From Macrostomum lignano (Eukaryota): 64,000 nt of DNA. The notes under the pieces are model-generated. The model was not told where the DNA came from, did no database searches, and saw nothing but the letters and a program-made list of their open reading frames with translations. The DNA is taken from positions 434,001 to 498,000 of the forward strand of contig NIVC01000162.1 of NCBI GenBank assembly GCA_002269645.1, given 5' to 3'. Positions within the stretch are counted from its first letter, which is position 1; every line of letters begins with the position of its first letter. Below, one piece after another: positions 7,326 to 64,000 of the stretch. A program made the translations under genes and the position numbers.

Positions 7326-8314
7326 TCAGTAGTAAGGAACAGTGTTTGGCACCACAACAACCGGCACACTGCTGTGGTGCACCACGTAGGCTGACACGCT
7401 GCCCAGCACCGTGCGCCGAACAGTGCCGAGTCCACGGCTACCCACCACCAGGAGGTCCGCGCCTCGATCCTCGGCCAGCTTAACAATGGCCGGGCCGGGA
7501 CCGCCGCAGTATTCGCACAGCCAGCGAGCGTCGGTCAGGTTGTACGGCAGGCACCAGTCGGATGTGACTTTGCGCTCCAGCTGGCGCGCTGAGGCCACTA
7601 TTGAATGCCAGACCTGAGTGTGTCAGATGTGCGGTTGGCATGCGCGCTTTTGGTGGACTGCGTGTGCTTATAGGCTCACCAAGGATGAGGTGCTGTTGCA
7701 GACAGACCATGTGAACCAGCGGCCCTACTATGACCCCTATGACCCGAAGACCCATGGATCTGAAGACTCAATAACCCTATGACCCTGTGATCTGACCACC
7801 CTGTGACCCAGCGGCCCAATGACCCTGTGAACCAGTGGCCTAATGACCTAAGAGTAAGACCCAATGACCCTGTGACTGTGACCTATGACCCTGTAACCCC
7901 ATTACCCTGTGATCCAATGACCCTGTGACCCCATGACTCTGATCTAATTACCAGCTGTGACCCAATCCAATGCCCTATGATCTAACGGCTGTAACCTAGT
8001 ATTTGGCCTACTAGCCACTAGCCAGCACTCATCGATTAAATATATCATATCATATCATATCAATACTCATAGATCGACCTGTCCCCCTCCCCACTCACCT
8101 GACTCGGGTCACTCCACAAGCCCGAAGGTGGCGCTTCGACGTGCAGAAAAGTCACGTGATCGCCCCGTCGATACAGCCGCCGCATGAAGTAGTCGAACGC
8201 CCGCTTAGATTGCTCGCCGCCGTCCACAGCGATGGCGACAACTCGAGATGAGCTGTTGTCGAATTTCTGTTTCTCGCTAACAGCTGTGATTTGCTGTTGC
8301 TGCTCGGGCTCCAT
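7326..8314 (-). CDS. universal stress protein (UspA domain), exons 8314-8099 and 7613-7326
   Basis: [18 protein letters not shown] (USP strand 1/helix 1) and [38 protein letters not shown] (G-2x-G-9x-GS ATP-binding motif). Donor CAG|GTGAGT at 8098 and acceptor CTCAG| at 7614, both phase 0. Confidence 0.92.
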
Positions 8315-9249
8315 GTTCTCGGGTGCTTTGGAACTTAACTTAGACTTAGGAATTTAACTATTTTGTTATTACAGTCAACTCTGGTTAGATTGTTTGTCAC
8401 ACCAACCAAGGGCCAGCCAGACAGAACTGGCCTGCGCTTCTCTATTTAGTTGATTCTAGGGCGTGCATCTTGCTCTGTCTCGTGTGTGGGGTGCCGGCTT
8501 TCTTATCTCTCTGCCGACGCCTGCCCTTGCTAAGTGCGCTTAGAATGTACATTGTCCCGGGCAGTGTACATTATTTTATTAATAGACTTCGACTTTTGCC
8601 TCCAACCCCATTTTTATCGGTTTGGCTGGACGGAAAACAGACCTAGATTAAGGAATGGTTTTTTGCCTTTCTTTTATTAATTATTTGTACTTTTTGACAG
8701 AATACATCGATCATCTTTGATTCTTTGACGTTTGTTATAAAATCACGCAATTTTAGCTGATTATACATTAACTTCCTTTGGTAAATATTAGGACTGCAAA
8801 TGCAACAAGAGTAATATAGCTCGTAAATAAACGAAGCATAAAAATCGTGTTAAAACGCGTTCCTAATTTTGTTTAACGCTTCGCTTATAAATAAATCGCT
8901 TTTAAATTGTTCAGGGAACATTTCAAAGGTGTCTTTGTTTTACCTTTAAAAGTAGAAATACTTTATTTTGATGCATTTTATAGAATATTAACCACACTTT
9001 CAAGCGCAGTATCCTGAGGAAGATAGTAATTGGTTAGTGCCATAAGAGATTAAAACACTGATTTTTTGTATTTAGGATTCTCAAGGAGGTAAATTACATG
9101 CACGAGACATGCTGAGCAAAGCTAATTGGTTAAACAGAAAGTGGCAGAGAGTTACAGAGCGGCTCAGATTGGTGCAGAATCTAATTTTCGTATTCTCAAT
9201 GTGTGCATGCCAAAGCTTGAATTCACTGCAGTTGCAGCTGTCACTAGTC

Positions 9250-37878: not shown

Positions 37879-38059
37879 GGGTGTGGCGGCTGAATAAAAT
37901 TCTTTGAGAAATTTGCTTTACTGAGCGCTCCTTTTATATATAGGCGCCTGTCAGGGCAGACCCTTGATCCACTTACTACTGCTTTCGTTCAGTAGTAGTA
38001 TATATAAATTGTATTCATATTTAGAGCTGTAGAGAGACAGCCATGAAAGAGCCTGTCTA

Positions 38060-42769: not shown

Positions 42770-43287
42770 ACCAACAGAAAGCGGAGGAAAAAATCCGGAG
42801 AATTCAGACCAATCAGAAAGCGGAGGAAAAAATCCGGAGAATTCAGACCAATCAGAAAGCGGAGGAAAAAATCCGGAGAATTCAGACCAATCAGAAAGCG
42901 GAGGAAAAATATGGAAAATTCAGACCAATCAGAAAGCGGAGGAAAAAATCTGGAAAATTCAGACCAATCAGAAAGCGGAGGAAAAATCCGGAGAATTCAG
43001 ACCAATCAGAAAGCGGAGGAAAATCCGGAAAATTCAGACTAATCAGAAAGCGGAGGAAAAATCCGGAAAATTCAGACTAATCAGAAAGCGGAGGAAAAAT
43101 CTGGAAAATTCAGACCAATCAGAAAGCGGAGGAAAAAATCTGGAAAATTCAGACCAATCAGAAAGCGGAGGAAAAATCCGGAGAACTCAGACCAATCAGA
43201 AAGCGGAGGAAAAATCCGGAAAATTCAGACCAATCAGAAATTAAGCGGAGGAATAATCCGGAAAATTCAGACCAATCAGAAAGCGGC
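42770..43287. repeat. 38-39-bp tandem array CAGACCAATCAGAAAGCGGAGGAAAAAATCCGGAGAATT, ~13 copies
   Basis: The last unit overlaps the TRPM stop codon. Confidence 0.93.
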
Positions 43288-46200
43288 GCCGTGGTGCTGC
43301 GCGGCCAGCCTCAGCAGCATTCGCTCGGTGGAGCCCAGCATTCGCCTGTTGGCCAAGTCCGTCCAAGCCGGCTGATCGACCTCGCCGAAAACGGTGGCCG
43401 CCGCCAGCAGCTGGTCGCCCATGCTTGAAGTGTAATTCTCGTGCACGTTGACGCAGGCCAGCTCAAGCCAGGCGTTGCTACCCGGATGCGATGGCGGCGA
43501 GACACCCGTGTAGAGCTGGTGGCGGGGAGCAGCAGTGTAAATCGAAACGTTTAATGCCTTGGACAAAAAACCAAAACCTCCCTTTGTGACCATAGACTAT
43601 TCGATTCTAGAATTAATCTCTAATACCGTGTCCATACCCTCTCCACCGTGTCCATACCCTCTCCACTGTGTCCATACCCTCTCCACCGTGTCCATACCCT
43701 CTCCACCGTGTCCATACCCTCTCCACCGTGTCCATACCCTCTCCACCGTGTCCATACCCTCTCCACCGTGTCCATACCCTCTCCACCGTGTCCATACCCT
43801 CTCCACTGTGTCCATATACCCTCTCCACCGTGTCCATACCCTCTCCACCGTGTCCATATACCCTCTCCACCGTGTCCATACCCTCTCCACCGTGTCCATA
43901 TACCCTCTCCACCGTGTCCATATACCCTCTCCACCGTGTCCATACCCTCTCCACCGTGTCCATATACCCTCTCCACCGTGTCCATATACCCTCTCCACCG
44001 TGTCCATACCCTCTCCACCGTGTCCATATACCCTCTCCACCGTGTCCATACCCTCTCCACCGTGTCCATATACCCTCTCCACCGTGTTCATACCCTCTCC
44101 ACCGTGTCCATACCCTCTCCGCTGTCCCTTTCCCTAGCCTCTCCATTCTCACTGCTTATTCTAGTTGATTTCAGCCAGTGCTTCAGTATCCGTAGTTGAA
44201 ATCAATGAGCTCTTCAACTGCTCACCATCTTGGTTGAGGCTTGCCGCAGGCTGCTCAATCTGCGGTCCAGCTGCCTGGGCCCGTCTGGGCGGCCGCGCGA
44301 CTCGGCGACCAGAGCCTCCTGCAGCCAGCCCATCGCCAGCTGCTCGTTGCAGGTGGCGGCTGCCGACTCTGCCGAGCCGCATCGTTCGGGATGCTTGACC
44401 AGGAACTGGGGGCGAGCGGCCGGGGTTCGGGTCGTGTGCTTGGACCCACCAGTCATTGACTTCTCACATTAAATCTCAAAATCCCACACCCTCGATCGAA
44501 AATCCCACACCCTCAATCGAAAATCCCACACCCTCAATCGAAAATCCCACACCCTCAATCGAAAATCCCACACCCTCAATCGAAAATCCCACACCCTCAA
44601 TCGAAATCCCACACCCTCAATCGAAAATCCCACACCCTCAATCGAAAATCCCACACCCTCATCGAAAATCACACACCCTCAATCGAAAATCTCACACCCA
44701 CAATCGAAAATCACACACCCTCAATCGAAAATCCCACACCCTCAATCGAAAATCCCACACCCTCAATCGAAAATCCCACACCCTCAATCGAAAATCCCAC
44801 ACCCTCAATCGAAAATCCCACACCCTCAATCGAAAATCCCACACCCTCAATCGAAAATCCCACAGCCTCAATCGAAAATCCCACACCCTCAATCGAAAAT
44901 CCCACACACTCAATCGAAAATCCCACACCCTCAATCGAAAATCCCACACCCTCATCGAAAATCACACACCCTCAATCGAAAATCCCACACCCACAATCGA
45001 AAATCCCACACCCTCAATCGAAAATCCCACACCCTCAATCGAAAATCCCACACCCTCAATCGAAAATCCCACACCCTCAATCGAAAATCCCACACTCTCA
45101 ATCGAAAATCCCACACCCTCAATCGAAAATCCCACAGCCTCAATCGAAAATCCCACAGCCTCAATCGAAAATCCCACACCCTCAATCGAAAATCCCACAC
45201 ACTCAATCGAAAATCCCACACCCTCAATCGAAAATCCCACACCCTCAATCGAAAATCCCACAGCCTCAATCGAAAATCCCACACCCTCAATCGAAAATCC
45301 CACAGCCTCAATCGAAAACCCCACACCGTCAAAAGTCCCACAACCTCCAGAACGCAAATCCCATTCGCTCACCCAAGGCAGCAGGTGCTCAGCCATGCTG
45401 ACATACTGCAGCACCTTCTGGCTTCCCTTCTTCATCAAATTGTGCTTGTCGTCCCGTTTCCATCTGGTGATGAGCACCACCAGTCCGTGATTTGGTCCCC
45501 ACAGAGGCAGCGGTCCTCGACTGGGCGGTCCAGTGGCGGCCGCGGTATCCTGCGTCGGCGGCGGCAGCGGCCAGCCATCGTCAGTCAGCGGGAAGCCGCC
45601 AACCAGCAGAGAGCGGCGGCTGAAGCCGCGAGCCCGGTCGAATGAATTGAACACTCGACGGCGATTCTCTGGCGTGGTGGCCGTGAGGCTGGGCTCGTCT
45701 CGCTGCCACTCCTGCCAGCTCGCATCGTCTGGGGCCGATGGCTGCGGAATTGGGGAAACAGCTGCCCTTGTCTGTGCCTTGTCCGTGTCTTATCTGTGCC
45801 ATGTCTGTGCCATGTCTGTGCCATGTCTGTGCCTTGTCTGTGCCTTGTCTGTGCATTGTCCGTGTCTTGTCTGTGCCTTGTCCGTGTCTTGTCTGTGCCT
45901 TGTCCGTGTCTTGTCTGTGCCTTGTCCGTGTCTTGTCTGTGCCTTGTCTGTGCCTTGTCCGTGTCTTGTCTGCGTCTTGTCCGTGTCATGTCTGTGTCTT
46001 GTCTGTGCCTTGTCCGTGCCTTGTCTGTGCCTTGTCCGTGCCTTGTCTGTGCCTTGTCCGTGCCTTGTCCGTGCCTTGTCTGTGCCTTGTCCGTGCCTTG
46101 TCCGTGCCTTGTCTGTGCCTTGTCTGCGTCTTGTCCGTGTCTTGTCTGTGCCTTGTCCGTGCCTTGTCTGTGCCTTGTCTGTGCCTTGTCCGTGCCTTGT

Positions 46201-49200
46201 CTGTGCCTTGTCCGTGCCTTGTCTGTGCCTTGTCCGTGCCTTGTCCGTGCCTTGTCTGTGCCTTGTCCGTGCCTTGTCCGTGCCTTGTCTGTGCCTTGTC
46301 TGCGTCTTGTCCGTGTCTTGTCTGTGCCTTGTCTGTGCCTTGTCTGTGCCTTGTCTGTGCCTTGTCCGTGCCTTGTCTGTGCCTTGTCCGTGCCTTGTCT
46401 GTGCCTTGTCCGTGCCTTGTCTGTGCCTTGTCCGTGCCTTGTCTGTGCCTTGTCCGTGCCTTGTCCGTGCCTTTTCTCTTGCAAACTTTTTGTCTTTTTC
46501 ATGCTTCCTGTTTTAGTCCCCTGTCCCCCTGTGTCCCCTGTCCCTGTCCCATGTCCCCAGCCGCACCGGATCGGTCAGGGCATCAGCTGGCGATCGGAAC
46601 GGTTTGGCCCGCAGCATCCGGTGCTCCATCAGCGGCAGAGCCACCCAGGTGAGCTCGGTGGTTAGCGACGAAGAGAATCGACTGCTGGCCCTGGCGCTGG
46701 AGACGTCGATCTCGGACAAGTGCAGCGAGTTGCTGCAGTGGCGAGGAGGGGGTCGGGGGTTCGAGTTTTGTAGGGAAGAGACAGGAGAGATGGCGAATTA
46801 GAGCCGCACCTTCTGCTTCCGGTTGCTTGGGCGGCCTCGGGCTCTCGCGCCGCCTGCCGGGCACCCCGCGGCGCCGCCTGGGCCTGAGCGGGCGACGGCG
46901 CGCGCCTGGAGCCGCCTGTTGAGGCGGCCGCTGCGGCCGGTTTTGGGTGCACATCGATGTTGAACTTGGAGCCTGCGCGGGAGCTGCAATAGAAATCGGT
47001 GGCAGATTGATAAGATAGCAGACACCCCAGGGGAAATACCGGACACCCTAGAGATCGCGGACACGACTGGTGAAATACCGGACAGCCTAGATATCGGACC
47101 CCCAGGTAAAATACCGGACACCTTAGAGATTCCGGACACCCAAGGTGAAATACTGGACACCCAAGGTGAAATACCGGACACCCTAGGTGGAAATACCGGA
47201 CACCCTAGAGATAACGGACACCCCAGGTAAAATACCGGACACCTTAGAGATACCGGACACCCTAGGTGAAATACCGGACACCCCAGGTGAAATACCGGAC
47301 ACCCTAGAGATCGCGGACACCCCAGATAAAATACCGGACAACCCAGGTGAAATACCGGACACCTTCGTAAAATACCGGACACCCTAGAGATAGCGGACAC
47401 CCCAGGTGAAATACTGGACACCCTAGGTGAAATACCGGACACTCTAAAGATATCGGACATCCTAGGTGAAATACCGGACACACTAGAAATAGCGGATACC
47501 CCAAGTGAAATACCGGACACTCTAGAGACATCGGACACCGAGGTGAAATACCGGACACCTACGTAAAATACCGGACACCCTAGAGATAGCGGACACCCCA
47601 GGTGAAATACTGGACACTTAGAGATATCGAACATCCTAGAGATAGCGGACACCCTAGATGAAATACCGGACACCCCAGGTGAAATACCGGACACCCTAGA
47701 GATCGCGGCCACCCAACAAAAGCAACAGCAAGCCAAACAAAAGCTGACCCCATATGCTGCACCAGCTGGTTCAGGCAGTTTAGACAGGCGGTCTGCTGCA
47801 GCTCCATCCTCTGGCCCAGCCTCCGCACTTCCTCTTGCAGTCCGTCGACCCGCTCAGACAATCCGACGCATCTCTCGTCAACATCGTCAATTCGACGCAG
47901 CTGCTTCTCGGTGTCGCGGAGACCCTCGCGGATTCGAACCCGGACCACCGAGTGCATGGTGTCCCAGTCCATGGACTGGGCGGCGGCTGCCGCGGCTGCC
48001 GCGGCCGCAGCGACCGCCGATGCGGTGTTTTCGGTAGTGCCGGCAGCCGACTGCGACGGCAGCTGCAGCTGGCGGCGACCTGCCGGGTCTGATGCATTCG
48101 CTCGCCGGCGCTGCTGATTGGCCTCCTGGCGACGGCGGAGGAACTCCTGCGAGCGGAGGCCCTCCCACTTGGTCAGCTGCTCCTCGCTCACGGCGGAGTC
48201 GCCCACGATGCAGCCTTGTAGGGGGGAGTGATCAGGTGTTTGTGAGCAGGCTGGAGTGATCTGTGTTTGTGAGCAGGCTGGAGTGATCTGTGTTTGTGAG
48301 CAGGCTGGAGTGATCTGTGTTTGTGAGCAGGCTGGAGTGATCTGTGTTTGTGAGCAGGCTGGAGTGATCTGTGTTTGTGAGCAGGCTGGAGTGATGTGTG
48401 TTTGTGAGTAGGCTGGGGTGATCTGTGTTGGTGAGCAGGCTGGAGTGATCTGTGTTGGTGAGCAGGCTGGAGTGATCTGTGTTTGTGAGCAGGCTGGAGT
48501 GATCTGTGTTGGTGAGCAGGCTGGAGTGATCTGTGTTGGTGAGCAGGCTGGAGTGATCTGTGTTTGTGAGCAGGCTGGAGTGATCTGTGTTGGTGAGCAG
48601 GCTGGGGTGATCTGTGTCTGTGAGTAGGCTGGGGTGATCTGTGTCTGTGAGTAGGCTGGGGTGATCTGTGTCTGTGAGTAGGCTGGGGTGATCTGTGTCT
48701 GTGAGTAGGCTGGGGTGATCTGTGTTTGTGAGTAGGCTGGAGTGATCTGTGTTTGTGAGCAGGCTGGGGTGATCTGTGTTGGTGAGCAGGCTGGGGTGAT
48801 CTGTGTCTGTGAGTAGGCTGGAGTGATCTGTGTCTGTGAGCAGGCTGGGGTGATCTGTGTCTGTGAGTAGGCTGGAGTGATCTGTGTTGGTGAGCAGGCT
48901 GGAGTGATCTGTGTTTGTGAGCAGGCTGGAGTGATCTGTGTTGGTGAGCAGGCTGGGGTGATCTGTGTCTGTGAGTAGGCTGGGGTGATCTGTGTCTGTG
49001 AGTAGGCTGGGGTGATCTGTGTTTGTGAGTAGGCTGGAGTGATCTGTGTTTGTGAGCAGGCTGGGGTGATCTGTGTTGGTGAGCAGGCTGGGGTGATCTG
49101 TGTCTGTGAGTAGGCTGGAGTGATCTGTGTCTGTGAGCAGGCTGGGGTGATCTGTGTCTGTGAGTAGGGGTTATGGGGGGAGTCATTTGGTGTCTGTGAG

Positions 49201-52200
49201 CAGGGGCTGTAGGAGCAAGAGCAGCATGAACACACAATGAGACATTTCTGACTAGTGAACTCACGCAAAAATCCTCGAAAATCTGAAATTGTGGTAGTGT
49301 AAGTATATTGTATTAAATAGGTAATAAAAATCTGATATCCATAATTCCCATGAAATTTGATTCCAACTCACTGATACGACACATGAACGGATCTGTTTCA
49401 AATTGGATCCGCCTGCGACGCACACCTAGATAAATTAGCAGAGCCAGATTCCACAGCAGCGACAGAGGCGGCGGCGCAATGCTGCGCTCGGTGTACTCGC
49501 GCATGATTAAGTAGCGCTGTAGAGTCCAGTACTGCATAGAGGAGCTCTGGATGCGCTCGTACGTGTTGCTGGAATGTCATTTGGGTCTCAATGTGCACTC
49601 TGTCGGGGTGGGGTGGGGGTGAGGGTTCCAATGTACACACTTTCTATCCCTCTGTCTGGTTAGTGCGCGGTGAGGGTGAGGGTTTCACTGTACACTCTTT
49701 CTATCCCTCTGTCTGGTTAGTGCGCGGTGAGGGTGAGGGTTTCACTGTACACTCTTTCTATCCCCCTGTCTGGTTAGTGCGCGTTGAGGGTGAGGGTTTC
49801 ACTGTACACTCTTTCTATCCCCCTGTCTGGTTAGTGCGCGTTGAGGGTGAGGGTTTCACTGTACACTCTTTCTATCCCTCTGTCTGGTTAGTGCGCGGTA
49901 AGAATGGGAGCTTCGATCTGAAATTTCGAGCTTGTGAAAGCGACCGGTGGAGAGGGTGGAGTTAAAAAGTAAACATTCAAAGACACTCACGCAAACATGG
50001 CAATTAGCAAGTTGAGAAGCAGCACATTCGTAAAGACTATGTAGAATCCCAATAGGACTGGCGCGATGTAGCGGCCCCAGGAGTCTGGACAGCCGGTCAT
50101 GTTTAGCCTGCAGGCGTCCGCTGAAAATATGATAAAATTTCTATGGCTTATGAAAATTTTAGAAACGATACGAAAACATCGGGGTCAGGCTGGTACAACG
50201 GGGTCAGGAGATGAGACCATACTGTCAGTACATGAGACCATCAGGTCAGGACATGTACTGTCAGGAGATGACGAATCAGTGAGTCAGTTGTCGCCAGCAG
50301 CTGAGGTCCAGATTCGAACTTACACAGCGTGGAAACTGAAAACGAGTCAAATCGAAGTGATTGAGTTTATTTTTACGGTGCCACAGAAGCCGAATTATTT
50401 AATTTGCGGAAAATCTGCTCTCAAGCTCTCACCTTCGCCGCTGATGTAGCCAACTTGTAGTTCGCCAAATGACTCAAAGTAAGCCAGCTTGAGCAGGCTC
50501 ATCACAGCGTCCATCGCTCCGCCCATGTCCGGCGTGGACATTGGGAACATTGTGCTCCACACAAACACTCCGTAGCCAACAACAAAGACCATGAATATGA
50601 CCATGAACGGGATGAGGTCCTCAATGATCTGGTTGGAGATGTGCGGGATTTGAGGCGATCAGTTTGAGTCATAGGCCTTCATTTGTCGTGTGATCTAATA
50701 GTCTAATCTGGATGATGACTCACTAATGATCTGGATGATGACTCACTAATGATCTGGATGATGACTCACTAATGATCTGGATGATGACTCACTAATGATC
50801 TGGATGATGACTCACTAATGATCTGGATGATGACTTACTAATGATCTGGATGATGACTCACTAATAATCTGGATGATGACTCACTAATGATCTGAATGAT
50901 GACTCACTAATGATCTGGATGATGACTCACTAATGATCTGGATGATGACTCACTAATAATCTGGATGATGACTCACTAATGATCTGGATGATGACTCACT
51001 AATGATCTGGATGATGACTTACTAATGATCTGGATGATGACTTACTAATGATCTGGATGATGACTCACCAATGACTCACCACTGTCTAACCAATGACTCA
51101 CCACTATCTAACCAATGACTCACCACTGTCTAACCAATGACTCACCACAGTCTAACCAATGACTCACCATGGTCTGAATCATGACCACCTTTGGCCCCAG
51201 GTTGACATGCACGGAGAAGTTCTGCAGCAGTCGGCAGAAATAGAAGAACAGCGCCAGGCCCAGCAGGATCCGGCAGATTCGCATCATCTTCACGGAGCCG
51301 GTGTCCAGTGCACTGCCCGAGGTGTCCACGCCGAAGATGGAGTCAGGCAGGCCGGGCACGAACCGCAGACCAAACACGATGGCAGCAAGAGTGAAAATCG
51401 CCATTGAGGCAAAGTCCATCAGGTTCCAGCCTTTAGCCAGGTGGCCAGCAACTGACTCGCCGCTCACCAGCAGCTGCTTCACGGCTTCAACCATGAAGGA
51501 CAGCACGAAAACGGCTAGCAGCAGCTGTAGTGGGTTCCACGACTGAGTGGCGTTGCCCACCGTGAATAGAAGGACGTACGAGTACAAGCATAGGAAGCCT
51601 GCGTAAGCAACCTGCGAGTTGGGGAGCGGCGATTGGCTCTCTGCGTAGATCCAGCTGATTGGCTCTTCTCTCCCCAACTCAATGCTGATTGGCTCTTCTC
51701 TCCCCAACTCGATGCTGATTGGCTCTTCTCTCCCCAACTCGATGCTGATTGGCTCTTCTCTCCCCAACTCGATGCTGATTGGCTCTTCTCTCCCCAACTC
51801 GATGCTGATTGGCTCTTCTCTCCCCAACTCGATGCTGATTGGCTCTTCTCTCCCCAACTCAATGCTGATTGGCTTTGCTCTTCCTAACTCGATGCTGATT
51901 GGCTCTTCTCTCCCCAACTCGATGCTGATTGGCTCTTCTCTCCCCAACTCAATGCTGATTGGCTTTGCTCTTCCTAACTCGATGCTAATGGGCTCTTTTC
52001 TCCCCAACTCGATGCTGATTGGCTCTTCTCTCCCCAACTCGATTCTGATTGGCTCCGTACTTACTGTAAGTACTAAGTACAAACTCATAAATCTGTAAAA
52101 GGCCAGCCCAGCCGCATGCGCTCACCGAGGTGTACAGAAAGCGCACCATAGGCGTGGCGTAGAAGTCGTAGGTGTCGCAGACCATCCTGCTGCACAGGCC

Positions 52201-55200
52201 GCGCCGCTGCTCTGACGACTTTGGCTTTGCGGCGACGTTCGCAGCTCCGCTGCCCGGCTTTTGCTCTTCCAACGGCAAGGCCGAGGATTCCTGCTGAGAT
52301 TTTGCACGCGTTGTAGTCGTACATAAACTTCCATTTCTAACAGTGTTCTCCATTTTCTTGACTTTATCCATTTCAACCCAATTCTCCCGATGTCTACCCG
52401 ATTCTCCCGATGTCTACCCGATTCTCCCGATGTCTACCCGATTCTACCGATGTCTACCCGATTCTCCCGATGTCTACCCGATTCTCCCGATGTCTACCTG
52501 ATTCTCCCGATGTCTACCCGTTCTCCCGATGTCTACCCAATTCTCCTGATGTCTACCCAATTCTCCCGATGTCTACCCAATTCTGCCGATGTCTACCCGA
52601 TTCTCCCGATGTCTACCCAATTCTCCCGATGTCTACCCAATTCTGCCGATGTCTACCCAATTCCCAAAATTCTTTCGACTTTCCTCTGCACCCAATCATC
52701 CCCACGTCCCCACCAGCTCTCACCTGATGGTTCCCACCGTCTCTGCGGCCGCCCGGCCGCCGAACCAGCAGCTGCAGCAGCGGCCCCACAAACCAGGGTG
52801 CTGAGCAGCCAACAAGGCCGACCAGCAGGAACTGCAGTCCGCTCAGGTGACCGACAATCCGGCCGCGCCACATCATGTCGAGCAGATTCTGGCAGCTGGG
52901 ATGCGCGATGAAGCTCAGCGAAGTGCCCTCGGCGGCCAGCTCGAAGGAGGTCGCCCCGCCGAAGGTGTGCAGCCGCCTGACAACCGTCATGCTGGCCAGG
53001 CGGGCCTCCTCAGCCCAGCAGTCATTGAGTACTTCGACAGCGAGCTGCTCGAAGCGGGCGGCCTGCAGGTCGAGCTCCGCCCGCATCTGCACGCTGTCGC
53101 AGCAGGCCCGGGCCCGCCGGAGCACCAGGGCGGCCAGCAGAGCGGACGGGATGATCTCGCGCTGGTGCAGGCAGAAGGCCTGGGCGAGGCCGAACCGGCC
53201 AGTCAGCAGGCACCACAGGGTGGCCCGCAGGCCGCCGGACAGGCCGGATTCGATGAGGTGGCCGGGCCGGGTCAGCAGGTGCACCGCGGCCTCGACGTCA
53301 GCCTGGTTGACCGTGTGGCTGGTGCTAGCCGAGCTGGGAGAGGCTCTGGACCCGCTGCGCTTGGCCACCAGGCGCTTGAAGATGCCGCAGCTCTGGTGGG
53401 TTGGGTGGGTTGGGTGGGTTGGGTGGATTGTGGATTGGGTGGTTTGGGTGGGTTGGGTGGATTGGGGGGATGGGTGGGTTGGGTGGGTTGGGTGGATTGT
53501 GGATTGGGTGGGTTGGGTGGGTTGGGTGAATTGTGGATTGGGTGGCTTGGGTGGGTTGGGTGGGTTGGGTGGATTGTGGATTGGGTGGGTTGGGTGGATT
53601 GGGAGGGATGGGTGGGTTGGGTGGGTTGGGTGGATTGTGGATTGGGTGGGTTGGGTGGATTGTGGATTGGGTGGGTTGGGTGGGTTTTGAGGGTTAATGG
53701 GTGACTTTAGATCAGGTCAGTAAAATCCTTACAAAGTCCTCCGCCATGGACATGCCGTACAGCTCCAGCATCAGCGAGTCCTTCACGTAGGCGTTCAAGC
53801 TGAAGCCCTGCTCCACCATCAGCTCGGCGAACTCCGTCTGGTTGTCCCGCAGAGCCTGCAGCATCAGTGGCTCCAGGTCGTTTTGCTGGAGTGGCGGCGG
53901 GTTGAAGAATGTTTGCATCCGCCCCCGATCCTAATTCTCATCCGCCCCCGATCCTAATTCTCATCCGCCCCGATCCTAATTCACATCCGCCCCCGATCCT
54001 AATTCTCATCCGCTCCTAGTTAGTATCTTTATCCGCCCCTAGTTAGTATCTTTATCCGCCCCTAGTTAGTATCTTTATCCGCCCCTAGTTAGTATCTTTA
54101 TCCACTCCTAATTAGTATCTTTATCCACTCCTAATTAGTATCTTTATCCACTCCTAATTAGTATCTTTATCCACTCCTAGTTAGTGTCTTTATCCGCCCC
54201 TAGTTAGTGTCTTTATCCGCCCCTAGTTAGTGTCTTTATCCGCCCCTAGTTAGTATCTTTATCCGCCCCTAGTTAGTATCTTTATCCGTCAATAGTTAGT
54301 ATCTTTATCCGTCAATAGTTAGTATCTTTATCCACCCCTAATGAGTATCTTTATCCGCTCCTAGTTAGTATCTTTATCCATCCCTAATGAGTATCTTTAT
54401 CCGCTCCTAGTTAGTATCTTTATCCACCCCTAATGAGTATCTTTATCCGCTCCTAGTTAGTGTCTTTATCCACCCCTAATGAGTATCTTTATCCGCTCCT
54501 AGTTAGTGTCTTTATCCACCCCTAATGAGTATCTTTATCCGCTCCTAGTTAGTATCTTTATCCACCCCTAATGAGTATCTTTATCCGCTCCTAGTTAGTA
54601 TCTTTATCCACCCCTAATGAGTATCTTTATCCGCTCCTAGTTAGTATCTTTATCCGCCCCTAATGAGTATCCAGATCCGCCCCTAATGAGTATCAGCTCA
54701 CAGTCCATTTCTTGGCATCCGTGAGGATCTTAGTCCTAGCAATGTCGCAGCGATCGATGGACATTGCGATGCGCAGCTGGTCCACATTCAAGACCTCCGA
54801 GTCTTCGCCCGCGGCTTTTTCGCCGTTGCCGCCGGCGTCGTCTCCTGCAGACTGCGGCATTCCCAGCAGCGAGGCGAGAATCTTGGCGTCGAAGTCGGAT
54901 GCCATGTCGTCCTCGACTGAGAACACCTCGATGAGGTGCTGCGCGGCGGCGATCTCCATCAGCATGGAGACCTCCGGCTTCGGGGCCTCCTGATCGCCGC
55001 AGAGCCATTTCTGCAGCGTCACGCTGGCGAGGACCTCCGGGCTGGCGGTGCGCAGAGCCGGATTGTCGATGCGAATCTCGCCGCTCAGCAGGTCAAGCAG
55101 GTAGCAGACCGCGTCGGCCAGGCCGCCGGAGCCGCGAACCAGCACAGCGGAGCAGTGGCGGAGCACCAGGCATCTGGATGGCGGCGGGCGGTAATAGACA

Positions 55201-58200
55201 TTATAGTATTTTCGGGGATTCCAAGAGAGAACCCGAATTTTATAAATAGAAACACGGGAGTTCTATAGTCAGTATCCAGAATATCCAATCAGAGTCAAGA
55301 GGAGTGCTATAAATAGAAACACGGAGTTTTCTATTCATTATCCAGTCTATCCAATCAGATTCAAGTGGGGAGCTATAAATAGAAACAAAGAGTTATTTAG
55401 CTCAGTTTAGTCAGCTCAGTTTTTATTTAGTCAGTATCCAGCCTATCCAATCGTAGTCAAGTGGAAAAGCTAAAAATAGAAACGCGGGAATCCCTAGCAA
55501 ATGTTCAATCAGATGAAAAGTCTGCAAGTATGAAAAGGCTTGAGAATTTAATTCAACGAATATGGAGCTCGATATGTAGCTCAACAAACCTATGCAGGCT
55601 GGCCACATCGTCCAGCGTTCCGTTGGCCAGAATGCAGCAGGCCGGCGCCTGCGGCATCGATTCGTCTAAGCGGCTGAGCAGGGTTTCAATTCGAGTTCGA
55701 ACTTCAACTACCGTGTCGGTCTCGGCGTTGTCGTCGACCATCAGGAAGAAGTTGTGGTTGGGATCAAGGCCAGGCAAAGATCCTGGCACGGCTGGCGGTG
55801 GCTGGTTTGATAAGCCCTGTTTGTTTGAAGTTTAAAAATATAATTTCTTACATTTCTACTTTCAGTAGTTTAATAGGTATTTTTCAGATTTTTAAATTAG
55901 CAATTATATAAAAGGAAACATTGTAATAAAAATTCAATGCTGACCGCAAAGTCTTTGCTGACTAGTTCGGAACGCGAAGGCACCCATTTCCATGGCAACA
56001 CTGCCAGCAGGCTGATCCTATCCTGTCCGTAGGCGTCATTGTAGTCTCTGACCGCCTTGCCAGCCAGTTTAACAATGCCTTTGCTCAGGCCGTCCGTCAC
56101 CACCAGAGAGTCTAAGTAAGGAAATTGAAAGAGATATTGGGCCTGGGGAATCTGTGCAAAGGTTTCAGGGAGACTGTGTCCGCTTGGTCCTTCAATCGTG
56201 TAAGCTACAGGGAGACTGTGTCCGCTTGGTCCTTCAATCATGTAAGCTACAGGGAGACTGTGTCCGCTTGGTCCTTCAATTATGTAAGCTAGAGGGAGAC
56301 TGTGTCCGCTTGGTCCTTCAATTATGTAAGCTACAGGGAGACTGTGTCCACTTGGTCCTTCAATTATGTAAGCTACAGGGAGACTGTGTCCGCTTGGTCC
56401 TTCAATCATGTAAGCTACAGGGAGACTGTGTCCGCTTGGTCCTTCAATTATGTAAGCTAGAGGGAGACTGTGTCCGCTTGGTCCTTCAATTATGTAAGCT
56501 ACAGGGAGACTGTGTCCACTTGGTCCTTCAATTATGTAAGCTACAGGGAGACTGTGTCCGCTTGGTCCTTCAATTATGTAAGCTACAGGGAGACTGTGTC
56601 CACTTGGTCCTTCAATTATGTAAGCTACAGGGAGACTGTGTCCGCTTGGTCCTTCAATCATGTAAGCTAGAGGGAGACTGTGTCCACTTGGTCCTTCAAT
56701 TATGTAAGCTACAGGGAGACTGTGTCCGCTTATTCCTTCAATCATGTAAGCTACAGGGAGACTGTGTCCACTTGGTCCTTCAATTATGTAAGCTACAGGG
56801 AGACTGTGTCCGCTTGGTCCTTCAATCATGTAAGCTACAGGGAGACTGTGACCACTTGGTCCTTCAATTATGTAAGCTACAGGGATTCTGTCCTTCAGGC
56901 AACTGAGTCTCACTTGAGCAGCCGGCCGCCTTCCAGAAGCCCTTCATAAAGACTTTGTTAAAGTCGGTGCGGGTTGACTGCCCGCCCAAGACCGTCACAA
57001 TCATGGAGGGTTGCTGGATGCCCCAGACTTTGTGCAGCAGCCACAACAGCTGGGCATCTTCGGTGAAGCTGGAGATGCGGACGAACTTCGCAAGGAGGAA
57101 ACGGGGATTTGCGATGGTTCAATTGCAGCTGCAGGCAGAATAAACATTGAAAAGTGCACACACTGCACACACTGCACACACTGAACACTGCACACACTGC
57201 ACACACTGCACACTGCACACACTGCACACACTGCACACACTGCACACTGCACACACTGCACACAGTTCACACACTGCACACTGCACACACTGCACACTAC
57301 ACACACTGCACATACTGCACACTGCACACACTGAGCACACTGCACACTACACACACTGCACACACTGCACACTGCACACTGCACACACTGCACACTGCAC
57401 ACAATGCACACTGTACACACTGCACACACTGCACACAATGCACACAATGCACACTGCACACTGCACACACTGCACACACTGAGCACACTGCACACACTGC
57501 ACACTACACACACTGCACATACTGCACACACTGCACACACTGCACACTGCACACACTGAGCACACTGCACACTGCACACACTGCACACACTGCACACTGC
57601 ACACTGCACACACTGCACACTGCACACAATGCACACTGCACACACTGCACACACTGCACACAATGCACACAATGCACACTGCACACTGCACACACTGCAC
57701 ACACTGAGCACACTGCACACACTGCACACACTGCACACTGCACACACTGAGCACACTGCACACTGCACACACTGCACACACTGCACACTGCACACTGCAC
57801 ACACTGCACACTGCACACAATGCACACTGCACACACTGCACACACTGCACACAATGCACACAATGCACACTGCACACACTGCACACACTGAGCACACTGC
57901 ACACTACACACACTGCACATACTGCACACTGCACACACTGAGCACACTGCACACACTGCACACTGCACACTGCACACACTGCACACTGCACACACTGCAC
58001 ACTGCACACTGCACACACTGCACACACTGAGCACACTGCACACACTGCACACACTGAGCACACTGCACACACTGCACACACTGCACACTGAGCACACTGC
58101 ACACACTACACACACTACACACACTGCACACACTGAGCACACTGCAGACAATGCACACTACACATACTGCACACACTGCACACACTGCACACTGCACAAA

Positions 58201-61200
58201 CTGCACACAGTTCACACACTGCACACTGCACACACTGCACACTGCACACACTGCACACACTGCACACACTGCACACACTGCACACTGCACACACTGCACA
58301 CTGCACACACTGCACACACTGCACACACTGAGCACAATGCATACAATGCACACTGCACACTACACACACTGCACATACTGCACACACTGCACACTGCACA
58401 CACTGAGCACACTGAGCACACTGCACACACTGCACACACTGAGCACACTGCACACACTGCACACACTGAGCACACTGCACACTGCACACACTGTACACTG
58501 CACACACTGCACACTGCACACACTGCACACACTGCACACTGCACACTGCACACACTGCACACTGCACACAATGCACACTGCACACACTGCACACACTGCA
58601 CACAATGCACACTGCACACACTACACACACTGCACACACTGAGCACACTGCAGACAATGCACACTGCACACTACACACACTGCACATACTGCACACACTT
58701 CACACACTGCACACACTGAGCACACTGCACACACTGAGCACACTGCACACACGGCACACACTCAGCACACTGCACACACTGCACACACTGAGCACACTGC
58801 ACACACTGAGCACACTGCACACACGGCACACACTCAGCACACTGCACACACTGCACACACTCAGCACACTGCACACACTGAGCACACTGCACACACTGCA
58901 CACACTGAGCACACTGCACACAAGAAGTAAATCGCAGCGCACTTTGGCAGAAAAGTAGTCGGACATCTTCAAGCTGCCGAAAGCGTTGGTGACAACGGGC
59001 ATCAGGTGGGTCTCGGCTGACCAGCTGCCGACTTCCAAGGAAACGAGCGAGGAGTGCTCAAAGTACAGGTGCTCGTCCTGTGGCAGTCCGCAGTGGCACA
59101 GGCCCTCGGCTCTGGGGTGACGAAGTGACAGGGAATGATCTGCCACCTGGGCTGCACTGAATGACCTGTCCACTCACTGAATGACCTGTCCAATCACTGA
59201 ATGACCTGTCCACTCACTGAATGACCTGTCCACTCACTGAATGACCTGTCCAATCACTGAATGACCTGTCCACTCACTGAATGACCTGTCCAATCACTGA
59301 ATGACCTGTCCACTCACTGAATGACCTGTCCAATCACTGAATGACCTGTCCACTCACTGAATGACCTGTCCAATCACTGAATGACCTGTCCACTCACTGA
59401 ATGACCTGTCCAATCACTGAATGACCTGTCCACTCCATGAATGACTTTCCCACTCACTGAATGACTTTATCACTCACTGAATGACTTTCCCACTCACTGA
59501 ATGACCTGTCCACTCACTGAATGACCTGTCCACTCACTGAATGACCTGTCCACTCACTGAATGACTTGCCCACTCACTGAATGACTTGCCCACTCACTGA
59601 ATGACTTTATCACTCCCTGAATGACTTGCCCACTCACTGAATGACCTGTCCACTCACTGAATGACCTGTCCACTCACTGAATGACCTGTCCACTCACTGA
59701 ATGACCTGTCCAATCACTGAATGACCTGTCCAATCACTGAATGACCTGTCCAATCACTGAATGACCTGTCCACTGACCTGTCCACCACTGAATGACCTGT
59801 CCACTCCATGAATGACTTGCCCACTCACTGAATGACTTGTCCACTCACTGAATGACTTGTCCACTCACTGAATGACCTGTCCAATCACTGAATGACTTGC
59901 CCACTCACTGAATGACTTGCCCACTCACTAATTGACTTTATCACTCACTGAATGACTTGCCTACTCACTGAATGACCTGTCTACTCACTGAATGACCTGT
60001 CCACTCACTGAATGACCTGTCCACTGACCTGTCCACCACTGAATGACCTGTCCACTCCATGAATGACTTGCCCACTCACTGAATGACTTGCCCACTCACT
60101 GAATGACTTGCCCACTCACTGAATGACTTGCCCACTCACTGAATGACTTGCCCACTCACTGAATGACTTGCCCACTCACTGAATGACTTGCCCACTCACT
60201 GAATGACTTGCCCACTCACTGAATGACTTGCCCACTCACTGAATGACTTGCCCACTCACTGAATGACTTGCCCACTCACTGAATGACTTGCCCACTCACT
60301 GAATGACTTGCCCACTCACTGAATGACTTGCCCACTCACTGAATGACTTGCCCACTCACTGAATGACTTGCCCACTCACTGAATGACTTGCCCACTCACT
60401 GAATGACTTGCCCACTCACTGAATGACTTGCCCACTCACTGAATGACTTGCCCACTCACTGAATGACTTGCCCACTCACTGAATGACTTGCCCACTCACT
60501 GAATGACTTGCCCACTCACTGAATGACTTGCCCACTCACTGAATGACTTGCCCACTCACTGAATGACTTGCCCACTCACTGAATGACCTAATCCTTGATG
60601 TACTACTGTTAATAAAAGATCCTGCATTACCTTTCAACAAACGTGCAGCACTCCCTCACATCCAGGCACCTGTGCTCGAAGAAGGCGCTGCTCATCTGCG
60701 AGAAAAAAATGGACAAAATGCCAAGAGGCTGGCTTGATGCACATGCCTGGAGCCTACTAGGCTCGTAAAGCGCATGTAGCTGTGAACACCGAACTTACGG
60801 TTTGGTACAGGCTGATTAATTTTTTAACCTCGCTGCGCTTGTTTGCCAGGTCTACCGGTGTCTTGCCGTCCTGAATAGATTGGAAACCGAGTGCTTATCT
60901 GTATGGCATTACGGGTACTGTACTGTACACACGCTCGGAGCACACTGTACTGTACACACACTCGGAGCACACTTTACTGTACACACGCTCGGAGCACACT
61001 GCTGTACACACACTCGGAGCACACTGCTTTACACACACTCGGAGCACACTATACTGTACACACACACGTGGAGCACACTGCTGTACACACACTCGGAGCA
61101 CACTGCTTTACACACACTCGGAGCACACTATACTGTACACACACACGTGGAGCACACTGCTGTACACACACTCGGAGCACACTGCCTTACACACACTCGG

Positions 61201-63664
61201 AGCACACTATACTGTACACACACTCGGAGCACACCATACTGTACACACACACATGGAGTACACTGCTGTACACACATGGAGCACACTGCTGTACACACAC
61301 TCGGAGCACACCATACTGTACACACACACGGAGCACACCATACTGTACACACACACGGAGCACACCATACTGTACACACACACGGAGCACACCATACTGT
61401 ACACACACACGGAGCACACTGCTGTACACACATGGAGCACACTGCTGTACACACACTCGGAGCACACCATACTGTACACACACACGGAGCACACCATACT
61501 GTACACACACACGGAGCACACTGCTGTACACACACATGGAGCACACTGCTGTACACACACATGGAGCACACTGCTGTACACACACTCGGAGCACACCATA
61601 CTGTACACACACACGGAGCACACTATACTGTACACACACTCGGAGCACACCATACTGTACACACACACATAGAGCACACTGCTGTACACACACTCGGAGC
61701 ATACTGCTGTACACACACTCGGAGCACACCATACTGTACACACACACGGAGCACACTGCTGTACACACACACGTGGAGCACACTGCTGTACACACACTCG
61801 GAGCACACTGCTTTACACACACTCGGAGCACACTATACTGTACACACACACGTGGAGCACACTGCTGTACACACGCTCGGAGCACACTGCTGTACACACA
61901 CTCGGAGCACACTGCTTTACACACACTCGGAGCACACTATACTGTACACACACACGTGGAGCACACTGCTGTACACACACTCGGAGCACACTGCTTTACA
62001 CACACTCGGAGCACACTATACTGTACACACACACGTGGAGCACACTGCTGTACACACACTCGGAGCACACTGCCTTACACACACTCGGAGCACACTATAC
62101 TGTACACACACTCGGAGCACACCATACTGTACACACACACATGGAGTACACTGCTGTACACACATGGAGCACACTGCTGTACACACACTCGGAGCACACC
62201 ATACTGTACACACACGGAGCACACCATACTGTACACACACACGGAGCACACCATACTGTACACACACATGGAGCACACTGCTGTACACACACTCGGAGCA
62301 CACCATACTGTACACACACACGGAGCACACTGCTGTACACACACTCGGAGCACACTGCTGTACACACACACGGAGCACACTGCTGTACACACACTCGGAG
62401 CACACTGCTGTACACACACTCGGAGCACACCATACTGTACACACACACGGAGCACACTGCTGTACACACACATGGAGCACACTGCTGTACACACACTTGG
62501 AGCACACCATACTGTACACACACTCGGAGCACACTGCTGTACACACACTCGGAGCACACCATACTGTACACACGCACGGAGCACACTGCTGTACACACAC
62601 TCGGAGCACACCATACTGTACACACACACATGGAGCACACTGCTGTACACACACTCGGAGCACACTGCTGTACACACACTCGGAGCACACCATACTGTAC
62701 ACACACACGGAGCACACTGCTGTACACACACATGGAGCACACTGCTGTACACACACTTGGAGCACACCATACTGTACACACACTCGGAGCACACTGCTGT
62801 ACACACACTCGGAGCACACCATACTGTACACACGCACGGAGCACACTGCTGTACACACACTCGGAGCACACCATACTGTACACACACACATGGAGCACAC
62901 TGCTGTACACACACTCGGAGCACACTGCTGTACACACACTCGGAGCACACCATACTGTACACACACACGGAGCACACTGCTGTACACACACATGGAGCAC
63001 ACTGCTGTACACACACTTGGAGCACACCATACTGTACACATACACGGAGCACACTGCAGTACACACACTAGGAGCACACTGTACTGTACACACACTAGGA
63101 GCACACTGCTGTACACACACTAGGAGCACACTGTACTGTACACACACTAGGAGCACACTGCAGTACACACACATGGAGCACACTGCTGTACACACACTAG
63201 GAGCACACTGCTGTACACACACTCGGAGCACACTGCTGTACACACACTTGGAGCACACTGCTGTACACATACACGGAGCACACTGTACTGCACACACACT
63301 AGGAGCACATTGTACTGTACACACACTCGGAGCACACTGTACTGTACACACATTCGGAGCACACTGTACTGTACACACATTCGGAGCACACTGTACTGTA
63401 CACACACAACTACTACTTAGCTACTAATTTATCACGAATTTGTATTTTAACAGTTGCACTCACCCTGTTTCTGACCGTCCAGTCGAGCCGATCAATCAGG
63501 CACAGCTGGGCTACACAGGCCGGGCCGGCCGCTGCGGCCAGGTGGCACGGCGTGTTGCCATGGCGATCGGCTACCTCGGACTGGCGCGGGATCCGCCTGG
63601 CCAGCTGGCGCACCAGGAACGGGTTGCCAACCAGACAGGCCAGGTGCAGCGGCGTCTCCCCGTC
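43276..63664 (-). CDS. TRPM2-like cation channel with N-terminal ankyrin repeats and C-terminal NUDT9-H domain; 5' end outside the window; ~1710 aa visible
   Basis: Exons: 63664-63464, 60870-60799, 60695-60631, 59111-58943, 57085-56914, 56111-55945, 55816-55590, 55173-54702, 53885-53733, 53392-52724, ~52336-52126 (acceptor uncertain), 51611-51168, 50628-50433, 50120-49991, 49568-49372, 48214-47749, 46983-46810, 46732-46567, 45741-45373, 44405-44226, 43515-43276. Motifs: GETPLHLA and GNTPCHLA (ankyrin); ECCTF..CHCG; WGIQQPSMIVTVLGG; LDPNHNFFLMVD; VRGSGGLAD; LGPKVVMI; FESFGE; NLLIAMF; YWTLQRY (TRP box); RGPLPLWGPNH..ITRWK and NAWLE (NUDT9-H). Phases are continuous except at one junction. Confidence 0.9.
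43628..44110. repeat. 21-23-bp intronic minisatellite (CCCTCTCCACCGTGTCCATAC)
   Basis: Fills the last TRPM intron. Confidence 0.93.
44475..45335. repeat. 21-bp intronic minisatellite (AATCGAAAATCCCACACCCTC)
   Basis: Directly visible. Confidence 0.94.
45770..46475. repeat. 11-bp intronic repeat (CCTTGTC(T/C)GTG)
   Basis: Directly visible. Confidence 0.94.
47020..47710. repeat. ~20-bp intronic minisatellite (GAAATACCGGACACCC(C/T)AGGT family)
   Basis: Directly visible. Confidence 0.9.
48235..49170. repeat. 27-bp intronic minisatellite (GTGATCTGTGTTTGTGAGCAGGCTGGA)
   Basis: About 34 copies. Confidence 0.95.
49618..49898. repeat. 57-bp intronic tandem repeat, ~5 copies
   Basis: Unit GAGGGTTTCACTGTACACTCTTTCTATCCCTCTGTCTGGTTAGTGCGCGGTGAGGGT. 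Confidence 0.9.
50705..51168. repeat. 23-bp (GGATGATGACTCACTAATGATCT) and 22-bp (GACTCACCACTGTCTAACCAAT) intronic arrays
   Basis: Directly visible; the 22-bp array includes the real splice donor at 51167. Confidence 0.92.
51655..52050. repeat. 30-bp intronic minisatellite (GATGCTGATTGGCTCTTCTCTCCCCAACTC)
   Basis: About 13 copies. Confidence 0.93.
52380..52665. repeat. 20-bp intronic minisatellite (ATTCTCCCGATGTCTACCCG)
   Basis: Directly visible. Confidence 0.92.
53395..53692. repeat. G-rich (GGGTT/GGGTG/GGATT)n intronic tract
   Basis: Dense GGG runs on the + strand. Confidence 0.9.
53915..54692. repeat. 23-bp intronic minisatellites (TAGTTAGTATCTTTATCCGCCCC and a related unit)
   Basis: Directly visible. 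Confidence 0.92.
56165..56885. repeat. 42-bp intronic minisatellite (GGGAGACTGTGTCCGCTTGGTCCTTCAATTATGTAAGCTACA), ~17 copies
   Basis: Directly visible. Confidence 0.95.
57150..58922. repeat. (CACTG/CACACTG)n intronic microsatellite mosaic
   Basis: Source of the many CVQC/HTAH ORFs in the track. Confidence 0.96.
59155..60585. repeat. 20-bp satellite GACTTGCCCACTCACTGAAT family, ~70 copies, in a TRPM intron
   Basis: Same unit and variants as 38060-41252. Confidence 0.97.
60915..63410. repeat. ~25-bp intronic minisatellite (GGAGCACACTGCTGTACACACACTC family)
   Basis: Lies between the two ankyrin exons; source of the 747-aa and 726-aa pseudo-ORFs. Confidence 0.96.
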
Positions 63665-63759: not shown

Positions 63760-64000
63760 AAGAGGGGCTGGCGCCTCCTCTGAAGCTGGCGCTCCTCTGT
63801 TGCTGGCGCCCTTTTCTGTAGCTGGCGCCCCCTCTGTAGCTCGCGCCCCTTTCTGTTAGCTGGCGCCCTTTTCTGTAGCTGGCGCCAACCTCTGTATCTG
63901 GCGCCCCTCTGAAGCTGGCGCTCCCTCTGTAGCTGGCGCCCCCCCTGGAGTAGCTGGTGCCCCCCCCCCCCTTGTAGCTGGTGCCCCATTATAGCTGGTA
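63760..64000. repeat. ~17-20-bp repeat (CTGGCGCCCCT..CTGTAG)
   Basis: Directly visible; runs to the window end. Confidence 0.85.

Follow-up and report, generated by a model that had tools for sequence, protein, structure and literature searches.

TRPM and TRPS (soromelastatin) channels have been reported to lack ankyrin repeats, and an ankyrin-free ancestor was inferred in the largest TRPM phylogeny, in which no Platyhelminthes were sampled (PMC7306681). In the same work, TRPS is marked by a divergent TRP box 2 and an intermediate TRP segment and groups with ced-11. N-terminal ankyrin repeats are already in the literature for a flatworm TRPM-like channel, TRPM_MCLZ (PMC11731825, PMC12861061), which is without SLOG and Nudix domains (PMC10788528, PMC11731825, PMC12861061). 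A 2024 review draws InterPro domains, including ankyrin, for other schistosome paralogues, and its text does not discuss a type that combines ankyrin (ANK), SLOG, and Nudix domains. Here we describe a gene of this type from Macrostomum lignano, located in a 64,000-nucleotide stretch of contig NIVC01000162.1 (assembly GCA_002269645.1, positions 434,001 to 498,000 of the forward strand; hereafter the window). In this gene, in-frame ANK exons lie upstream of the exons of a TRPM2-like channel, and the gene departs from the ankyrin-free TRPM trait, as do five relatives. Judging from the sequence, we consider it highly probable that the ANK and TRPM exons form one minus-strand gene, which extends from beyond position 64000 to 43276, is cis-spliced from 60798 to 60696, and encodes a channel subunit. 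The ANK-TRPM join is supported by the same architecture in relatives, by conserved intron positions, and by the location of the junction within a single exon in paralogues.

Ankyrin exons and the proposed ANK-TRPM junction

The first exon inside the window (E1, 63464..63664, minus strand, 201 nt) is preceded by cctcag and followed by gtgagt. It encodes two ankyrin repeats (translation DGETPLHLACLVGNPFLVRQLARRIPRQSEVADRHGNTPCHLAAAAGPACVAQLCLIDRLDWTVRNR; motifs DGETPLHLAC...GNTPCHLAAAAG...DWTVRNR), and in its boundaries and phase 0 it agrees with exon 2 at two other M. lignano loci that contain the paralogues, L001 (4141-4398) and L002 (to 3158). E2 (60799..60870, minus strand, 72 nt), with attcag before it and gtaagt after it, encodes the last ankyrin repeat, DGKTPVDLANKRSEVKKLISLYQT. 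This is a typical C-terminal capping repeat, whose counterparts in the alignment are EGKTILNYL in the relative P0177 and SGRSALDCA in P0033. E2 is followed by a 103-nt intron (60696..60798, minus strand; GTAAGT...TTTTTTTCTCGCAG, 3' end tttttttctcgcag), which is present as a single copy in the window. E3 (60631..60695, minus strand, 65 nt; translation MSSAFFEHRCLDVRECCTFVE) begins with ATG directly after its acceptor (TTTTTCTCGCAG/ATG), and the TRPM-homologous region starts there (SSAFFEHRCLDVRECCTFVE); the exon ends in phase 2 and is followed by gtaatg. The E1-E2 and E2-E3 joins are both phase 0, and the fused frame is free of stops. The three exon positions, the GTAAGT donor, the ATG after the acceptor, the phase-0 joins, and the open frame had been given in the original prediction and were confirmed on the minus strand. 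The same prediction placed the TRPM N-terminal motif ECCTF..CHCG within 60631-63664; its ECCTF part is found there, but the CHCG part lies in the next exon (59111-58943), outside that interval.

Pfam searches with the 91 residues of E1 and E2 returned Ank_5 at 41.3 bits (cut-off 27), Ank_2 at 41.0 (27.3), Ank at 38.1 (21.1), and Ank_3 at 33.2 (22.3). GTAAGT occurs 10 times on the minus strand of the 64 kb, once exactly at the end of the last ankyrin repeat. Since the Pfam cut-offs are passed and a rare hexamer is yet exactly placed, the observation is more than chance. The donor, ACC/GTAAGT, fits the M. lignano cis-donor motif GT[G/A]AG (PMC8629364). Read-through at this donor runs for 13 codons to a TAG at 60760-60758, the stop that had been predicted near 60760. 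In the mechanism that we propose, cis-splicing of the pre-mRNA would join the GTAAGT donor (60798) to the CAG acceptor (60696), and the extra 103-nt intron would fall within the linker that leads from the last ankyrin repeat to the TRPM N-terminal motif. The resulting channel subunit would carry a short ankyrin domain at its N-terminus, followed by SLOG/MHR1-2, MHR3-4, the S1-S6 segments and their TRPM-type FGE pore, the TRP helix, a coiled coil, and finally a NUDT9-homology domain (NUDT9H). We infer that the 60798 and 60696 sites are used in vivo and that the product functions as a tetrameric cation channel.

At least one further coding exon is expected beyond 64000, upstream of E1; the paralogues predict a single exon of about 130 aa there, with the start codon and the first ankyrin repeat. 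Judged by homology, the ankyrin domain would comprise about four repeats, including the one that is encoded outside the window. An in-frame ATG is located four codons 5' of the E1 acceptor (minus strand, 63676-63665; ATGACTCCTCAG/GAC...). E1 could in principle serve as the first coding exon via this ATG; the paralogues and the public model A0A1I8FFN3 favor an extra upstream exon.

UniRef A0A1I8FFN3 (P0050), which represents the same gene or a homeologue, is frameshifted and joins the ANK exon directly to MSSAFFEH (...CLIDRLDWMVRKQ/MSSAFFEH...). The E2 peptide is absent from this model, and an alternative E3 donor at 60670 is used. E2 may accordingly be read as a cassette exon, or as an exon missing in a homeologue, with E1 spliced straight to E3 to give a channel without the capping repeat; skipping its 72 nt would keep the frame. 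However, A0A1I8FFN3 comes from an older, indel-ridden assembly, contains a frameshift inside E1, and drops the conserved ECCTFVE motif. E2 itself has good splice sites, and an E2 homologue is present in every ANK-TRPM relative. We therefore regard E2 skipping as unlikely.

The E3 frame is open through the 103-nt intron back to the TAA inside GTAAGT, and 103 leaves a remainder of 1 when divided by 3. The intron may have arisen by intronisation of earlier coding linker sequence. An introner-like origin was also checked, and no copies of the intron were found elsewhere in the window, in L001, or in L002. With this intron spliced out, the linker has about 20 residues, versus about 27 in the paralogues; with the intron retained, it would have about 54 residues and a stop inside. 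The open frame, the length of the interval, and the continuous exon found at this position in the paralogues could also indicate a formerly coding linker broken by an indel. Alternatively, the locus could be an unexpressed duplicate in a partly duplicated genome, since the Mlig_3_7 assembly (DV1 line) keeps duplicated large-chromosome sequences (PMC8629364). Such an artefact or decaying copy seems extremely improbable to us, because the interval has a consensus donor, a polypyrimidine tract, and a CAG acceptor, the spliced linker agrees in length with the paralogues, and every resolved exon is open with GT-AG flanks.

The large introns are tandem-repeat arrays, with a 25-nt unit repeated 95 times at 60923-63407 and a 20-nt unit repeated 72 times at 59155-60587. 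Introns throughout the TRPM gene largely consist of such arrays, including a 9-nt unit repeated 106 times at 58005-58922 and those of many other introns, and they yield long spurious open reading frames in all frames. The plus-strand open reading frames across 60631-63664 are repeat translations or antisense to the ANK exon, and nothing else was found among them.

Relatives of the gene and the separation or fusion of its two parts

Relatives were collected by an exhaustive HMMER search with the paralogue P0002 as query, followed by Pfam and the source names. A strict ANK regular expression missed divergent repeats, which were detected by Pfam and a home-made ANK hidden Markov model (HMM). Ank_2 above the cut-off, followed by LSDAT_euk, TRPM2, and Ion_trans, was found in five proteins. 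Two are M. lignano proteins, PAA68780.1 (BOX15_Mlig025325g2, 1889 aa) and PAA85706.1 and others (BOX15_Mlig003066g1-3, 1781 aa), whose models both come from the RNA-seq-annotated Mlig_3_7 assembly. The other three are from Clonorchis sinensis (KAG5447154.1), Opisthorchis viverrini (KER24789.1), and Schistosoma mekongi (KAK4474030.1). The sampled molluscan, brachiopod, nemertean, cnidarian, and choanoflagellate relatives showed no ANK. The name 'ANK_REP_REGION' on P0003/P0004 was rejected as evidence for ANK; these are fragments without the N-terminus, and the name probably derives from the ankyrin-like MHR3 region.

The N-terminus encoded in the window is colinear with those of the relatives (ANK repeats, linker, CxC..P..H, FGE, SLOG start; 35% identity to P0177). 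Exons were mapped on L001 and L002, the genomic loci of the two M. lignano paralogues. In all three genes, the ANK exon (E1 of the window) opens three codons ahead of xPLH, and its phase-0 end immediately precedes the (D/E/S)G(K/R) of the capping repeat. A phase-2 intron before CxCG is common to the window gene and L001, and a phase-0 intron before the first SLOG exon is common to all three. In the paralogues, a single uninterrupted exon (L001 4996-5198, L002 3771-4022) encodes both the capping repeat and the TRPM N-terminus, and thus the ANK-TRPM fusion there is independent of any splice. Neither paralogue has an intron at the position of the 103-nt intron, which is the only gene-specific feature of the window gene. 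The shared boundaries and homology indicate that the window ANK exons are the ancestral 5' part of the TRPM gene family and not a neighboring gene.

The two paralogues (Mlig025325g2 and Mlig003066g1-3) share ANK, SLOG, the TRPM2 domain, Ion_trans, and a NUDT9-like tail with the window gene, but their N-terminus is only about 30-35% identical to it, and Mlig003066 is without the CxCG motif and without the intron before it. The trematode proteins, annotated as 'TRPM2', likewise have Ank_2 N-terminal to LSDAT_euk, TRPM2, and Ion_trans as well as a NUDT9-like C-terminus, whereas their ANK-SLOG linker is longer (~150 aa) and the classic WIP...C.K motif is kept.

In M. lignano, 30% of genes are trans-spliced to a spliced leader (SL), the leader ends in ATG, and intra-operon spacing peaks near 100 bp (PMC8629364). 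Because of this frequency, the leader ATG, and the spacing of about 100 bp, it is reasonable a priori to suppose two transcription units, possibly in an operon, with a small ANK gene that ends at the TAG at 60760-60758 and a TRPM gene that starts separately at the ATG at 60695 after SL addition at 60696. Several observations weigh against a single gene. The acceptor is followed at once by an ATG codon, and it is there, at E3, that TRPM homology starts, as expected of a stand-alone TRPM start, while read-through past the donor would add just 13 codons to the ANK gene. The 103-nt interval is on the same scale as the operon spacing peak (PMC8629364). Automated models do fuse neighboring genes, as is probably the case in P0040, where vinculin and TRPM are combined. 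In addition, the sole public model of the window gene, A0A1I8FFN3, skips E2 and uses the other E3 donor, and M. lignano models were matched in the word-index searches only in fragmentary, frameshifted form.

Nevertheless, two separate units are very unlikely in our view. The ANK exons share sequence homology and exon boundaries with the N-terminal ANK exons of TRPM paralogues, in which ANK and TRPM share one exon; since the gene is ancestrally single, two units would need a recent gene fission. They would also need a perfect GTAAGT by chance exactly at the end of the last repeat, and neither AATAAA nor ATTAAA is present in the ~60 nt from the TAG to the acceptor. The acceptor, TCGCAG, is one base off the reported trans-splice motif [T/C]TNCAG (PMC8629364). 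Furthermore, an upstream cis donor normally suppresses trans-splicing; in the account of Conrad et al. 1993 given in PMC8629364, such a donor on the same pre-mRNA prevails over trans-splicing at an acceptor.

A single cis-spliced ANK-TRPM gene, which we prefer, is compatible with a dual output. In this case, the cis-spliced mRNA would be accompanied by an ankyrin-less TRPM mRNA from the ATG at 60695, generated through SL trans-splicing or, alternatively, from a promoter inside the repeat-filled intron of 2.6 kb. E3 begins with ATG, the intron, and hence its acceptor, is present only in the window gene and not in the paralogues, and SL trans-splicing is common in M. lignano (PMC8629364). On the other hand, an acceptor with a strong cis donor 103 nt upstream is a poor trans-splice substrate, and the methionine at the start of E3 could be a plain internal residue. 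We consider the dual output conceivable but doubtful.

Among the public models, P0040 (2116 aa), with a vinculin domain ahead of the TRPM channel, probably represents a fusion of gene models. As in this case, N-terminal extensions of TRPM proteins in automated annotation call for genome-level checking.

Domains of the encoded channel and other genes in the window

The gene model has about 20 exons on the minus strand, from 63664 down to the stop at 43276, and was built from GT-AG rules and fragmentary M. lignano models. Many segments of these protein models, the closest ones retrieved by word-index protein search, are identical to window exons, which points to M. lignano or a very close relative as the source. 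The human TRPM2 sequence was used only as a tblastn guide for exon location, not as identity evidence. The following exons are all on the minus strand. E4 (58943..59111), which follows the phase-2 intron shared with L001, contains the CHCG...H motif and the start of MHR1 (NAFGSL). SLOG/MHR1-2 is encoded by E5 (56914..57085; VTVLGGQ...) and continues in E6 (55945..56111; VVTDGLSKGIVKLAG...LAVLPWKW) and E7 (55590..55816; LDPNHNFFLMVDD...; possible alternative acceptor at 55801), and E8 (54702..55173) covers the SLOG end and MHR. E9 (53733..53885) encodes MHR3, within the Pfam TRPM2-like domain, E10 (52724..53392) encodes MHR3-4 and pre-S1, and E11 (52126..52293), whose acceptor is uncertain, encodes the pre-S1 linker. 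The membrane part is distributed over E12 (51168..51611; S1-S4 and S4-S5 linker), E13 (50433..50628; S5 and pore helix, FGELQVGYISGE), and E14 (49991..50120; S6, FTNVLLLNLLIAMF), and the TRP helix lies in E15 (49372..49568; YWTLQRYLIMREY). E16 (47781..48214) encodes the coiled-coil region, with a firm start and an approximate 3' end, and E17 (46567..46731), with an approximate 5' boundary, encodes the linker before NUDT9H; the E16/E17 boundary is approximate, since the linker has low complexity and its frame differs among the public models. The NUDT9-like domain is encoded by E18 (45373..45741; first part, LPLWGPNHGLVVLITRWKRDD), E19 (44226..44405; region of the apparently degenerate Nudix box), and E20 (43276..43515; last part and stop, ...AAQHHGAAF*). 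The E18/E19 join is placed by homology only.

The domain order is ANK, SLOG/MHR1-2, MHR3-4, six transmembrane (TM) helices with a pore, TRP helix, coiled coil, and NUDT9-like C-terminus, and the string ANK-SLOG-MHR-TM-TRP-coiled coil-NUDT9H is correct provided that the 60799/60695 join is used. Pfam searches with the spliced model returned LSDAT_euk at 99.2 bits (cut-off 25.7; model residues 168-390), corresponding to SLOG/MHR1-2, the TRPM2-like domain PF25508 at 95.5 bits (cut-off 27), corresponding to MHR3-4, and Ion_trans at 45.5 bits. S1-S6 and the TRP helix align to TRPM2/3/4/5/7/8, and FGELQ, NLLIAMF, and YWTLQRY can be recognized as motifs in the sequence itself. The closest solved structures are those of Nematostella TRPM2 (6co7, E=7.6e-101) and of zebrafish and human TRPM2, and the homology to TRPM2 in the PDB starts at model residues 93-96, which are the first residues of E3.

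In the PDB sequence search, the C-terminus matches human NUDT9 (1q33, E=1.5e-12, query 65-263) and the NUDT9H of Nematostella TRPM2 (6co7, E=1.8e-10), whereas no match to it was obtained with the Pfam NUDIX model. At the Nudix box, NUDT9 ...GEKISATLKREFGEEA... is aligned opposite ...ERCGSAESAAATCNEQL..., where the E18/E19 join is assigned by homology. Measured against the intact Nudix box for ADP-ribose hydrolysis, GX5EX7REUXEEXGU, the box of the window gene looks degenerate or lost.

The best database matches to the window gene are all TRPM2-type proteins. A word-index search without ANK retrieved fragmentary M. lignano models and TRPM2 proteins of Hydra, fish, and Salpingoeca, and a search that included the ANK exons was swamped by generic ANK and TRPN proteins. 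The word-index search with the N-terminal 267 residues gave no matches. The negatives of these word-index searches carry no weight, because the relevant proteins are evidently absent from that index.

Other genes were recognized on the minus strand of the window. At 33476-37917, directly downstream of the TRPM gene, large, very GC-rich (63-67%) exons encode immunoglobulin and fibronectin-III domains, as in a cell-adhesion-molecule-like gene. A DMRT-type transcription factor gene at 9253-10107 encodes two DNA-binding domains of the DM (doublesex/mab-3) type (Pfam DM 89.8 bits over two stretches), and two exons at 7329-7622 and 8063-8353 belong to a universal stress protein (Usp) family gene. 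At 4791-5787, a neuropeptide-precursor-like open reading frame, for which Pfam gave no match, has a signal peptide (MASRHILVLGAVAAILASIPFCSLA) followed by about 17 tandem copies of FNGGMFGKR, after which the array shifts frame. These copies are predicted to yield FNGGMF-amide after dibasic cleavage and amidation.

The flatworm TRPM family and known TRP channels

In a rough neighbor-joining tree of 1083 columns, the flatworm TRPM2-like channels form a single clade (100%). Within it, the window gene joins the two M. lignano ANK-SLOG paralogues (87%) and, with these, the trematode ANK-SLOG proteins (69%). The ANK+SLOG group is sister to ANK-only TRPM_MCLZ-like genes, with weak support (53%); the TRPM_MCLZ-like members (Mlig012389, Mlig019746, and O. 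viverrini T265_12782) were chosen by architecture, and Smp_333650 itself is absent from the tree. A separate ankyrin-free flatworm clade (100%) includes probable orthologues of TRPM_PZQ, judged by length only. Several further M. lignano genes have ANK, MHR3-4, and Ion_trans without SLOG (Mlig012389, Mlig020550, Mlig019746, Mlig014463, Mlig025374, and Mlig032509; P0090, P0132, P0139 and cluster members). They resemble TRPM_MCLZ, a family so far discussed for parasitic flatworms.

These results are best explained if a flatworm-specific TRPM2-like clade acquired an ankyrin domain before the macrostomid/trematode divergence. The original prediction described an ANK-SLOG-TRPM-NUDT9H chimera. This architecture in one frame finds good support in the relatives, the intron positions, and the NUDT9 match, but it is not a fresh chimera; on comparison of these proteins, it is that of an old, conserved flatworm family, already in public protein records. 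The window gene adds a member to this little-discussed family rather than representing a new channel type. The statement that canonical TRPMs lack ankyrin repeats holds in PMC7306681, but a flatworm clade has them and that survey was without flatworms. The absence of ankyrin in TRPM describes the taxa that have been sampled up to now and is not required structurally.

A broader scenario joins these elements, and we offer it tentatively, as one that is somewhat improbable as a whole. A TRPM2-like channel would have gained ANK once in early flatworms, the ANK+SLOG+NUDT9H type would be a surviving intermediate, and TRPM_MCLZ would have arisen by domain loss. In the window gene, the new intron and ATG would then allow ankyrin-bearing and ankyrin-less channels through a choice of either cis-splicing or SL trans-splicing.

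Contrary to the ankyrin-free picture of TRPM, a short ankyrin domain is present in an entire flatworm clade of TRPM2-like channels that are complete in other respects. This clade seems to be related to TRPM_MCLZ, which together with one other flatworm TRPM channel is a known target of anthelmintics, and uncharacterised parasite paralogues of the same build are flagged by it. Knowledge of TRP channel mechanism is unchanged by our analysis, and the architecture was already readable from public annotations. The gene is a tractable case for the role of an ankyrin module in a SLOG/NUDT9H-gated channel, since transgenesis is possible in M. lignano and heterologous expression of its TRPM_PZQ has been achieved before. 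That the ankyrin domain would sense mechanical, thermal, or electrophile stimuli, as suggested earlier, is speculation, because the domain has about four repeats, as in TRPC/TRPV, unlike the long TRPN/TRPA arrays. The most economical guess is that it would bind proteins as a peripheral module in the cytoplasm, below the MHR ring, and would not act as a gating spring.

Compared with canonical TRPM and TRPM2 channels (Nematostella 6co7, zebrafish 6drk, human 6mix), the window gene has the same SLOG/MHR regions, TM core, FG[EQ] pore, TRP helix, and NUDT9H. However, the canonical channels have no ankyrin repeats (PMC7306681), with 30-70 unrelated residues in their place, and are only about 22-25% identical overall, and the Nudix box appears unconserved in the window gene. 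TRPM_PZQ (Smp_246790) and the ankyrin-free flatworm TRPM2-like clade share SLOG and a Nudix-type C-terminus with the window gene, but the probable orthologues examined gave no sign of ankyrin repeats. Conversely, TRPM_MCLZ (Smp_333650, the meclonazepam target) and M. lignano Mlig012389, Mlig019746, and others share the N-terminal ankyrin repeats, but TRPM_MCLZ is without SLOG/MHR1-2 and NUDT9H (PMC11731825), both of which the window gene has. TRPN/NOMPC, TRPA, TRPC, and TRPV also have N-terminal ankyrin repeats before a six-TM TRP core. TRPN proteins were the first matches outside Macrostomum when the ANK exons were in the query, and these matches came from the ANK repeats and the generic Ion_trans only. 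All four of these families are without SLOG/MHR and NUDT9H, and TRPN and TRPA have 14-29 repeats; in its size of about four repeats, the ankyrin domain of the window gene resembles those of TRPC and TRPV.

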